A stretch of 22,985 nucleotides of DNA from Amoeboradix gromovi X-113 (lineage: Eukaryota; Fungi; Sanchytriomycota), in the NCBI GenBank assembly GCA_018985225.1, contig JADGIF010000077.1:1-22985 (forward strand), given 5' to 3'. Below the pieces are notes generated by a model. It was not told the origin of the DNA and searched no databases. It saw only the letters and a program-made list of their open reading frames with translations. The position numbers and the translations under genes were made by a program. This document shows positions 9,155-22,343 of this stretch, one piece after another; within the stretch, counting starts at the first letter, position 1, and every line of letters starts with the position of its first letter.

Positions 9155-9544
9155 GAGACATCAAATATAAAAACTGGACTAACTTTATGTAACAACTTGG
9201 AACATTATTTAAGAGGCGAGTGGACATTCAGCTAGTTGCGGAGTTGACGAGTATAAAAGGAAAATAAATATTCTGTACAGCTATTGTCTTACTCTTTAAT
9301 GATGATAGTATAACATTAAATGAAATGAAGAAAGAGTACCGTCTAAGAAAATGCACCTTTTGCTTAGATGCTCAAAGACCTCATATATTTGAACGAGATG
9401 CAGGGTCTTCTAGTTTTATTTTAAAAAGAGGAATACAATCAATGAGAGAAAATTGGTATAATAGAAGATCTTTTATTAACACTTCCTCCGTATGGTGCAC
9501 CTCCTTTAAAAACGAGTTGGTCTAGTTTTTATATTTGGTGTCCC
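9155..9544 (+). mobile_element. Fanzor-associated MITE copy B (390 bp), retaining the Fanzor C-terminal coding fragment
   Basis: Left TIR GAGACATCAAATATAAAAACTGGACTAACT (9155-9184), right TIR ending TATTTGGTGTCCC (9544). Internal frame 9325-9525 reads YRLRKCTFCLDAQRPHIFERDAGSSSFILKRG. Confidence 0.92.
9252..9259 (+). promoter_or_regulatory. TATA-like box in the MITE left subterminal region
   Basis: TATAAAAG at the same position in copies A (53-60, minus), B, C (11961-11968, minus) and E (22018-22025), oriented toward the right end. Confidence 0.45.
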
Positions 9545-9775
9545 ACCCCAGGGCTAGTAATAATTCGAATAATCCCATTAAATTAAATTAATATACCATG
9601 ATAATTTCAGTGCTACCAAATCAATCTTCAGCCAATTGTTAACTCTTGTTTGAAAAAGGAATTAGTTTCATACAGAATTCAAAAAGTCAGGAAAGCATAA
9701 CCATATTAAATGAAATCGGTTATGAAAAAGGAAAACCTCGAGGGTTTTGCAAAGGTATGAAACAAGCTAAATTTA

Positions 9776-10735
9776 TTACTTGATTTTGGAATCAATCAAT
9801 TCATTTGACACCTTTGTCAATTTTCTTGCCAGCTCCTCATCATATGCAAGTTTATGTAAGCGCGTACACAACTGGCAATCCGAGTAGTATTTTCCAAATT
9901 GAATTTCAGGGTCGAGAGCGCAAACTATTGTTGTAGAAGTGCCTTGGGGAATATCTTTGCCTCCTAACAACAATCCAGCCTCACTAAATTTTAGCGCACA
10001 ACAGAATTGAATAGCACTTTGCGCTCCAAAGTGCTGCATCAAGTTGGTACTCTGAATGTTTCCAGGATGCAGTGCCACAAAAGCCACTTTGTCGCTCCCG
10101 AATTGTTTTTGCATATCCACAGTAAACAAAATATTGGCTAACTTGGAGTGGCCATAACGTTCCCAGCAATTGTAGCTTTTAGATCCATCTAGATCGTTGA
10201 ATAAAATGCCTTCTTTAGGAGAAAAAATAACATGGGCAATACTACTTAAAACAACCACACGGGAAGGTTCAGAAGTTGCTGATTTCTGCAACACTGGCAA
10301 CAATAACTTTGTCAAATAGAAATGGCCTAGATGGTTAGTGCCGAACTGATTTTCAAAGCCGTCTTCAGTTAAACTCATCGGGCATGCCATAACGCCGGCG
10401 TTGTTAATCAGTACATTGATTGGTTTACCTGATTTAATATATTGCTCAGAAAAAGCTTTTATTGATTTCAAACTACTTAGATCTAGTTGCATCACAGTAA
10501 TATTCGCATTAGGAAGATCTTTTAAAATATCTTTCTTTGCTTCCTCACCTTTGGATGTGTTTCTGCTACAGATAGTGATGATGCCGTTTTGTTTTGCTAA
10601 GACTCTGGCAGTTTCCTTTCCAAGACCGATGTTGGCACCAGTTATTACAAAGTGTTTACCTACTACTCTTTCCTTGAACACAGCTGCTACTTCATCTGCT
10701 GTGGTTTTGTTGTTGAATTCGGGGTTTGAAGACAT
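9776..10735 (-). CDS. Short-chain dehydrogenase/reductase, retinol dehydrogenase/WWOX-like
   Basis: TGANIGLG (TGxxxGxG), NNAGVM, FGTNHLGHF and YGHSK (YxxxK). Start taken at MSSNPEF; upstream in-frame Mets are possible. Confidence 0.93.
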   Translation of the reverse strand: MSSNPEFNNKTTADEVAAVFKERVVGKHFVITGANIGLGKETARVLAKQNGIITICSRNTSKGEEAKKDILKDLPNANITVMQLDLSSLKSIKAFSEQYIKSGKPINVLINNAGVMACPMSLTEDGFENQFGTNHLGHFYLTKLLLPVLQKSATSEPSRVVVLSSIAHVIFSPKEGILFNDLDGSKSYNCWERYGHSKLANILFTVDMQKQFGSDKVAFVALHPGNIQSTNLMQHFGAQSAIQFCCALKFSEAGLLLGGKDIPQGTSTTIVCALDPEIQFGKYYSDCQLCTRLHKLAYDEELARKLTKVSNELIDSKIK

Positions 10736-11282
10736 GCCAAATTGTGTGAAGGAGATCATTCTTAGCCCAAATGACATCTGCCTAATGAAAATCGTTTGGC
10801 ACAAGCTCATTGAGACGGGACCTGAAGAGATGAAAGTGGATTTCAAAACTGAAAGAGGGGTTGGGTTTTCAAATGCCCTTGCATCCTTAAAAAGTATCCA
10901 AAACTGTGTGGCACAATTCTTACAGCTTTTGTTATTTATTCAATAAACCATTTTCTTAATTAAATCACAATTCCTTTATATAAAAAGTATTCTGATTGTT
11001 TAAACACTCAATATTCTTCCTTTACCCAAATGAAAAATAGAATCAAATTCTGTAATCCAGAATGTGTTAAATCTAAAGAAATGGTTTAAAGGTAATCCCA
11101 CCTCAAGGTAGCGAAAGCGAGAGCTATCAATGTAACGCAACGACTAAAACTGTTGCTTTCTAAATGGAAATTCTCGATTAACAAGGAAACCAGGACTTTC
11201 AAAGAAAATTTAAGAAATGAGAATGTGATTTATTACAGTAATGGCAGTTGCAGTCGCAGCAGAGATTTTCGCTGCTCTATAA

Positions 11283-11515
11283 TCCTCGTTAAAAGTCTTG
11301 ATTTCCGAGAAAATCGACAATTTCCACAGAGAAACAAGCAATGCTAGATGCTCCGTTACGGTGATTCCTCACGCTTTTCACTACCCTGAGGCGGGATTGA
11401 ATAAGGATGCAGATAATTGATGTATATGTTTCTTGCTGCCATATGGTCTCTATCCATGTCAGTTTCTCAATGTCGATGAGTGTTCAAGTATCTACAAGTT
11501 ATTTATTCAAATCTA
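11283..11515 (+). repeat. Dispersed decayed coding repeat, family 2, fragment 2
   Basis: 11283-11453 is a close inverted match to 21356-21525. About 11454-11515 (CAGTTTCTCAATGTCGATGAGTGT...AGTTATTTATTCAAAT) more distantly resembles about 4686-4740. Confidence 0.88.
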
Positions 11516-20682: not shown

Positions 20683-20843
20683 CTGTAGAGTAGGAACCAA
20701 AGAATAAATAAGTTTGATATTGGCGAATGATGGTGCGATTATGTAGAATTGTGATTAATCACTCGATAAGAAATATCCAAAATGATGGAATATGGCAAAA
20801 CTTTTTGACATGTTAAGTACCTATCAAAGAAGTTTGTGCGATT

Positions 20844-21525
20844 TTAAATTTCCAATGCTTTTTTTGATTTTTCACGCATTGGCCTCGCCGATTTGGTAGA
20901 TTTAACAGAGTTTTTCAAGTTATTACGCTGAAACACAATTTGTATTTTCTTTGCTTTAGTGTTGGGTTGTGGTGTTACTTTTGGATGTTTAAAACCTTCA
21001 GGCAGATAATACCTTACGGTGCTAGCACCAAGAAACAATCCACTGCCATAAACAGCTCGATTGTTTTCTTGAATAAATCATTTATCGCGAATTTGTATGT
21101 ATTTTTGTATAATTTCATGACTTCCAGATTTTTCCAATAGCCTAAAAACTCGATATTCTTCCTTTTCACAAGTGGTAAATCAAATCTAAAGAAATAACTA
21201 GCAGGTAAAGCATACATTCATCAACACTGAGGAACTGGTCCAAGCATGGAACAATTAGATGCCTTTTAATACCCAGAAAGAGATCAACGATAAATAAACC
21301 TGTAAACCATTTATTTAATAATTAGTATGCTCTTGGTCTTACAATATGTGCAACAATAGAGACCATATGGCAGCAAGGAACATATACATCAAGTGTCTGC
21401 ATCCTTATTCAACCCCGCCTCAGGGTAGTGAAAGCGTGAGCAATCACTGTAACGGAGCATCTAGCATTGCTAGTTTCTCTGTGGAAATTCTCAATTTTCT
21501 CGGAAATCAGGACTTTTAACGAGGA
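20844..21525 (-). pseudogene. Decayed coding repeat, family 2, longest fragment (probable transposon-gene remnant)
   Basis: Contains in series the segments matching 11283-11453 and 4601-4862, with broken reading frames on the minus strand. The lower boundary is approximate. Confidence 0.7.
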
Positions 21526-21896
21526 GTAAATAATAAATACGAAATTAATAATATGCTACCTTGTTTCTTGCCATAAGGGGAAGTTGACCTTCTCATTGGA
21601 AAAGTATAGCAATCATATCGATACTTGTGATTTACTTTATTGGCTTCAGATTTAGTGCTCAGTTCCAAGTTTTCTTGGCTATGCAATGGAAAAGTATAAT
21701 GTCAATTATGCAACATTCTCTATAAAAACTGAACTGTACGGAAGTAAAATGTACAGCAAAAAAATGGTGTCGAGTTCTTTAATGTCTTTGAAGTACAGAG
21801 AAACTCTACAGGACTGCGCAAAACCGTTGTTTAAATTGACGAGAATATCCTCCCAAAGGGAATTTTTTTTCGAATCTGGAGTCTCACTTAACAGTA

Positions 21897-22343
21897 GAGA
21901 CATCAAATATAAAAACTGGACTAACTTTCTGTAACAACTTAGCACATTATTTCAGCTTTATTAATTTTATGGATTCAAGAGGCGAGTAGACATTCAGCTA
22001 GTTGCGGAGTTGACGAGTATAAAAGGAAAATAAATATTCTGTACAGCTATTCTCTTACTCTTTCATCCAATCTTTATTTCAAATAAACCTCTGATTCATA
22101 ATACTAATTCATAATAGGGTATATTTTCATTTAAGAACTGTCTTGCCCATAAATAGAGACCTTTCCTAATAAAGTTATGGCCAAGAGAACGAGATGCAGG
22201 GTCTTCTAGTTTTATTTTGAAGAGAGGATTGAAAGTAATGAAAGAAAATTGGTATAATAGAAGATCTTTTATTAATGATAGCATTTCCTCCGTATGGTGA
22301 ACCTTTAAAAACGAGTTAGTCTAGTTTTTATATTTGGTGTCCC
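21897..22343 (+). mobile_element. Fanzor-associated MITE copy E (447 bp) with 4-bp TSD AGTA
   Basis: AGTA|GAGACATCAAATATAAAAACTGGACTAACT ... AGTTAGTCTAGTTTTTATATTTGGTGTCCC|AGTA. Confidence 0.94.

Follow-up and report, generated by a model that had tools for sequence, protein, structure and literature searches.

The window analysed here (22,985 bp) is one whole contig of the 10.55-Mb, 1319-contig assembly of the fungus Amoeboradix gromovi X-113. Its genes are mostly single-ORF and of fungal type, including those for a HECT ligase, an SDR, an RRM protein, Tam41 and a subtilase. The window also contains copies of a short element (Table 1). The initial annotation described four complete copies (B, C, D and E; 390, 473, 299 and 447 bp) with 30-bp terminal inverted repeats (TIRs); their places, lengths and TIRs are confirmed, the four 20-nt right flanks that it quoted are exact, and the shared right block of about 155 nt measures 154, 158, 160 and 157 nt, respectively, from GAACGAG to the right end. 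Its single partial copy holds for A, which consists of a left end only, whereas the other incomplete element, P, is a relic of a sister family. B and C share about 250-270 nt of their 3' side, well beyond the 155 nt, and the filler of E is common to two other loci. A perfect 4-bp duplication flanks E only, those of B, C and D being mismatched.

Table 1. Elements and features in the window, in order of position.
Feature	Position	Strand	Description
Copy A	42..181	-	left end only (TIR 152-181); truncated by contig start
TATA-like box in A	52-63	-	conserved left block
Second family	4601-4862	-	non-autonomous, no TIRs
Copy B	9155..9544	+	390-bp ghost; parent's left 169 nt and right ~248 nt; H1 present; no CA motif in left flank; flanking 4-mers AACT/ACCC
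TATA-like box in B	9249..9260	+	conserved left block
Hairpin H1 in B	9341..9369	+	7 bp, bulged G, 4 bp, 6-nt loop; codons R-L-R-K-C-T-F-C-L-D
155-nt block in B	9391..9544	+	RuvC-III codons (ERD..SS.IL), C-terminal tail, short terminal hairpin, right TIR 9515-9544
Second family	11094-11205	+	non-autonomous, no TIRs
Second family	11280-11453	-	non-autonomous, no TIRs
Copy C	11617..12089	-	473 bp; dominant ~480-bp type; left block, H1 and ACA left flank present; flanking 4-mers ATTT/ATAA
Hairpin H1 in C	11796-11824	-	differs from B in bulged base only
TATA-like box in C	11960-11971	-	conserved left block
Copy D	15090..15388	+	299 bp; left 58 nt, filler, right ~195 nt; H1 reduced to 3' arm; TATA-like block missing; flanking 4-mers ATCT/AACT
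Relic P	17306..18283	+	near-complete sister-family relic of ~980 bp; separate TIR, broken Fanzor
Second family	21053-21528	+	non-autonomous, no TIRs
Copy E	21897..22343	+	447 bp; left 219 nt, filler, right 157 nt; without H1; perfect duplication AGTA
TATA-like box in E	22015-22026	+	conserved left block

The second non-autonomous family of the window ends in a TnpB/Fanzor2-type tail (RDHMAARNI). At least 150 matches to PF07282 in the genome (560 candidates), mostly in short frames, point to a second large ghost family. An IS607-type locus (L068, contig C542, 1417-3169; PF07282, PF12323 and PF00239), in which a resolvase remnant overlaps an open 569-aa Fanzor2, shows little DNA similarity to this second family.

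The high genome-wide copy number suspected for the TIR family is borne out by 1321 matches of the TIR pattern (reversed control, 0) and by 708 matches of a right-end 21-mer, corresponding to about 700 right ends in ~10.5 Mb, or ~66 per Mb. With lengths of 283-660 bp, TIRs, a target duplication, high copy number and no intact gene, the copies are MITEs. The sample compared below comprises ~40 complete copies and is biased toward the C type.

The Fanzor origin claimed for the family stands, as the complete copies map onto a 1,660-bp relic (contig C33) that extends from TIR to TIR between a perfect AAAT duplication and contains a frameshifted Fanzor and no transposase. The 3' block translates into KEYRLRKCTFCLD...FERDAGSSSFILKRG, a TnpB/Fanzor zinc finger and RuvC-III, and represents the C-terminal Fanzor reading frame, which continues into the right TIR. 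On contig C1157, 436 codons of a frame truncated by the contig start are open; they include all three RuvC acidic residues, and the stop codon lies within the same TIR. Its IGIDPG, ESYTSKHCSVC, RKCTFC and FERD segments follow the C-terminal Fanzor1 motif, D-x(125-275)-[TS][TS]xx-C4 zinc finger-x(5-50)-RD (PMC3627910). Two mini-contigs are open fragments that are 95-97% like the parent. Long copies are mostly broken, and genome searches revealed neither a complete intact Fanzor gene of the parent family nor a linked transposase.

A profile search of 1.8 billion proteins returned only 21 relatives. Several of them belong to elements that have no transposase and the same GRGACA...TGTCYC ends, with an ANNT-like 4-mer beyond, and an intact 642-aa relative sits in a same-TIR element. 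The structure model of this relative is of low confidence (pLDDT 54, TM ~0.26) and best matches SpuFz (E 8.8e-6) and GtFz (6e-4). When the C1157 protein was searched against PDB sequences, no match emerged, including to the solved Fanzors, and the viral contigs searched gave none either. Intact 642-aa relatives were located in TIR elements at L215 (8001-9929) and L174 (274-2202). The former contig resembles giant-virus sequence (Pox_Rif, P8_CR, TFIIB, DUF5901), and its element is flanked by a perfect AATT duplication and lacks the CA motif, while the latter adjoins the end of a histone H3-like gene. The copies are deletion derivatives of a transposase-free TIR transposon whose sole gene is a divergent Fanzor1. 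Since they keep both inverted repeats and the right-end region and have no functional ORF, they can be classed as putative Fanzor ghost loci of the Spu-1 type.

Further elements of this kind occur in the genome. In relic P, RuvC-II, the zinc finger and RuvC-III are legible in pieces, the right TIR lacks its last ~10 nt, and the sister family has at least six further genome copies. The junction filler of the ~480-bp type (consensus ~203-219) matches 17 nt of the sister-family TIR (window 17313-17329), which suggests that it was captured from a P-type end. The branch is also represented by a third Fanzor1 element, which is far more divergent (L084, contig C574, about 904-2222), has short GGGACA...TGTCTC ends and contains the H1 hairpin. 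The same TIRs enclose a different interior in a 1,757-bp element (L052, contig C154, 77-1833), whose 383-aa gene product contains a Schlafen AlbA_2 domain (E 2e-13) and whose left flank has no CA motif.

The left flanks of the family are characterised by A at -6 (78%), C at -5 (95%), A at -4 (97%) and T at -1 (82%), the right flanks by A at +1 (98%), T at +4 (78%) and G at +5 (39%). These frequencies are consistent with a 4-bp ANNT duplication together with an ACA on one side only. The T...A pair as part of the TIR, or as a TA duplication, was rejected on the agreement of -4 with +1 and of -1 with +4. Membership in the IS630/Tc1/mariner class was likewise rejected, as the duplication is 4 bp rather than TA and no DDE_3 link to the TIRs was seen; four DDE_3 (IS630/Tc1-type) matches with open frames of 208-407 aa are present on contigs C692, C99, C1267 and C422. 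The left C is found in 38 of 40 copies and the left A in 39 of 40, a conserved upstream motif as at ghost loci. Genome-wide, 485 left ends carry CA exactly, versus 201 right ends with the mirror motif (local sample, 38/40 versus 19/49; p=1e-8). In Spu-1, CA stands before the left inverted repeat; by analogy, the TAM here may lie near 5'-(W)ACA, and the guide would begin one base into the right duplication. An orientation-biased transposase could yield the same one-sided picture.

The 4-bp duplication is perfect in 13 of ~37 complete copies, against 3.5 expected by shuffled pairing. About two thirds of the complete copies have a mismatched duplication, in contrast to the 95-98% conservation of the flanking C and A. 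The mismatched pairs look randomly paired, as if by assembly mis-joins or recombination between copies; age alone is without power to explain them.

Evidence for an RNA element comes from the coding sequence itself. Three lineages with 63-65% protein identity were compared for codon choice at identical residues: the codon is shared in 93 of 113 cases (82%) in the last ~215-220 nt and in 232 of 438 (53%) upstream. The rise also holds between samples (35/39 versus 21 expected, amino-acid-matched), is absent in comparison with relatives of ~30% identity, and extends from a hairpin, H1, to about -110. H1, an 11-bp hairpin over the zinc-finger codons R-L-R-x-C-x-x-C-L, is the main cause of this rise and lies 205-177 nt from the right end, ~50 nt upstream of the 155-nt block; in the wider family it is placed 155-213 nt from that end. 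The codon pairs of its inner stem stay complementary in most lineages despite residue changes (K/F, M/H, R/A and R/T); the M/D lineage has one mismatch. Across ten sequences, which are related lineages and the same ones on which H1 was first spotted by eye, 96% of cells are paired and five pairs show two-sided changes, a result reached in 0 of 500 shuffles for cells or score, while slid controls give 25-55% pairing. This covariation spans relatives of ~30% protein identity. RNAalifold recovers H1 unaided, its G-U wobbles lie on the sense strand, and in a further in-genome lineage (V/N codons) the inner stem is kept as predicted beforehand (9/11 pairs). H1 is therefore a candidate 5' stem-loop of an omegaRNA.

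Downstream of H1, a consensus fold of the 155-nt block from 16 right ends has a covariation term of -0.64, and the helices tested show wobble changes only. Fold z-scores for the last 90-145 nt are mostly unremarkable, with only C below -2, and Rfam has no match in the window. The structured RNA proposed at the right end is thus supported by synonymous conservation, the covarying H1 and the TAM-like left flank, whereas the helices tested within the 155-nt block show no two-sided change. This block cannot be upheld as the protected scaffold, as the only two-sided covarying helix lies upstream of it and is missing from D and E.

As a whole, the family is best explained as non-autonomous Fanzor1 ghosts, of which the H1-positive ones would be scaffold-competent, and as a selfish by-product; we consider this explanation to be reasonably probable. 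The parent, with its GRGACA...TGTCYC ends, 4-bp ANNT duplication and divergent Fanzor1 as presumed sole gene, would encode an omegaRNA that overlaps the last ~60 codons and runs from H1 to the end of the TIR. A DDE transposase would mobilise the copies in trans. The TATA-like box in the left block is a putative promoter, and ghosts retaining this promoter-like block together with H1 (most copies; here B and C) would be competent scaffolds, the D and E types being presumably plain MITEs. Some H1-positive ghosts probably make guides; an intact Fanzor would load them and cut empty alleles, upon which the insertion would be restored. After insertion, copies would decay neutrally, which would make the ghosts a by-product of a selfish element and not a maintained library.

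The alternative that survives best, possible if not probable, regards all copies as plain deletion-derivative MITEs. The ghosts would then be silent or the nuclease dead, the CA bias would stem from an orientation-biased transposase, and the scaffold would be carried passively because it adjoins the right TIR. The breakpoints are in its favour. Most copies have one junction in common (left 190 nt, right 266-271 nt) and are therefore not independent deletions; the ~700 copies derive from a few founder deletions. Across the types of the ~40 complete copies, right breakpoints are spread over about -157 (E), -177, -196 (D), -229, -248 (B), -266/271 and -295 nt, three of seven types cut H1, and left breakpoints lie 57-219 nt from the left end. 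Internal deletions lie at -83..-252 and -142..-157 in longer relics, and at -71..-99 in one short copy. With up to two mismatches, the genome contains 350 matches of a motif at -157, 331 of one at -214 and 453 of one at left +100, counts to be read against detection in 22/26, 25/26 and 25/26 intact copies, respectively, and against the truncation of many copies by contig ends. Breakpoint spread and motif counts thus give no sharp boundary at 155 nt of the kind that the initial annotation had expected to guard the 3' block. Nor does the description "omegaRNA-only" hold: the copies retain the left block (57-219 nt) with about the same frequency, and coding DNA makes up the 3' block. Equal private mutation rates on the left and right (0.39 versus 0.37 per site) and the mostly broken state of the long copies also suit plain MITEs.

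Three observations speak against plain MITEs. No amplified short type breaks less than 157 nt from the right end, whereas left breakpoints come as near as 57 nt, although this minimum (n about 7) is only a weak hint of 3' protection. Variants shared among copies are few in H1 (2) and in the promoter-like block (4-6 per 30 nt; consensus 91-150, which holds the TATA-like box) compared with a mean of 21, a scarcity that is compatible with constraint on amplified lineages. The one-sided CA is as at Spu-1 ghosts, whose scaffolds are functional in assays (Saito et al. 2023). Private mutations, on the other hand, are not reduced in H1 (10 versus 11.5 expected), and single ghosts are therefore under no visible selection.

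A second alternative, which we judge unlikely, takes H1 as a signal for mRNA processing, stability or translation and confines the scaffold to the last 75-100 nt, so that all four copies would be competent. Known Fz1 omegaRNAs total 75-150 nt, their first stem-loop being the conserved part (PMC11423790), and a scaffold beginning at H1 would be longer in this family (205-213 nt from the end); moreover, most relatives have a short terminal hairpin that uses the TIR. Against this, H1 starts 154-173 nt from the end in distant relatives and at 154-158 nt in four of them, near the GtFz1 length, and synonymous identity stays raised from H1 to about -110.

The strong form of the original proposal, a selected genome-wide guide library in which every copy is retained as a guide gene and which polices empty alleles or serves the host, is highly improbable: the density of ghosts, the retention of H1 in roughly 80% of the copies with the 155-nt block (corrected counts) and the asymmetric flank motif would fit it, but H1 is without purifying selection after insertion, the D and E types have multiplied despite lacking it, 49 flanks compared with ~300 kb have no targets beyond one chance-level 13-mer, and mismatched duplications would mean guide-seed mismatches at many loci. 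The 13-nt match links the right flank of L005 to L014, with AC in front. Among the contigs of a single DNA run, no empty-site joint skipping C or D was found.

On the preferred reading, Fanzor1 ghosts as a selfish by-product, the copies could lend guides to an intact Fanzor elsewhere. A further-reaching version, rather doubtful at present, is that transcripts of several hundred ghosts with promoter, H1 and right end place distinct guides in trans on one or a few Fanzors. RNA-guided homing, filtered by an ACA TAM, might then have driven the MITE burst to ~3% of this compact genome via a ~205-nt omegaRNA within zinc-finger and RuvC-III codons.

For the role that Fanzors play for their transposons in a native genome, ~700 insertions supply statistics, since TAM and duplication are readable from the flanks. 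Types with and without H1 provide a natural control on whether guide competence favours spread, and the covarying H1 marks a definite 5' limit to use when the RNA is cloned. Intact metagenome relatives of 585-642 aa are testable nucleases from a branch recovered scarcely or not at all by Pfam and PDB sequence searches.

Among known systems, the Sola2 superfamily offers one comparison. GRG termini are a Sola2 trait. The Sola2-type Fanzor1 elements DFa-1/2/3 and PPa-1/4/5 (PMC3627910) are likewise TIR elements with AT-rich 4-bp duplications (AWWT), but their TIRs measure 12-21 bp instead of 30 bp, and here the central positions of the duplication are less limited to A and T. As in TnpB omegaRNA (ISDra2) and GtFz1, the guide scaffold would overlap the 3' end of the nuclease frame, by 17 aa in GtFz1 (PMC10432273) and by a predicted 60 codons or so here; unlike IS200/IS605 elements, the present element has TIRs and a duplication.

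The closest parallel is Spu-1 with SpuFz1, also a transposase-free TIR element with a single Fanzor1 gene, 30-nt inverted repeats (PMC10432273, PMC3627910), a conserved CA upstream of the left repeat and many ~500-nt ghosts that keep the right end. Saito et al. (2023) reported 134 ghost loci in Spizellomyces punctatus, showed that ghost scaffolds work, and proposed in their discussion that a ghost guide repertoire lets Fanzors act on transposons in trans (PMC10432273); the trans-guide idea put forward for the present window was thus already published for Spizellomyces. The Spu-1 scaffold is a 75-nt region after the stop codon, whereas the predicted scaffold here overlaps ~60 codons including RuvC-III, and the ghosts, unlike those of Spu-1, are direct deletions that retain coding DNA. 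The duplication is 4-bp ANNT instead of TA, and ~700 copies in 10.5 Mb contrast with 134 in the 24-Mb Spizellomyces genome. The Fanzor of this family, known here from its sequence, has no sequence match to solved Fanzors. What sets the family apart from the system of Saito et al. is its divergent branch, its density, its 4-bp duplication and a scaffold that seems embedded in ~60 codons.
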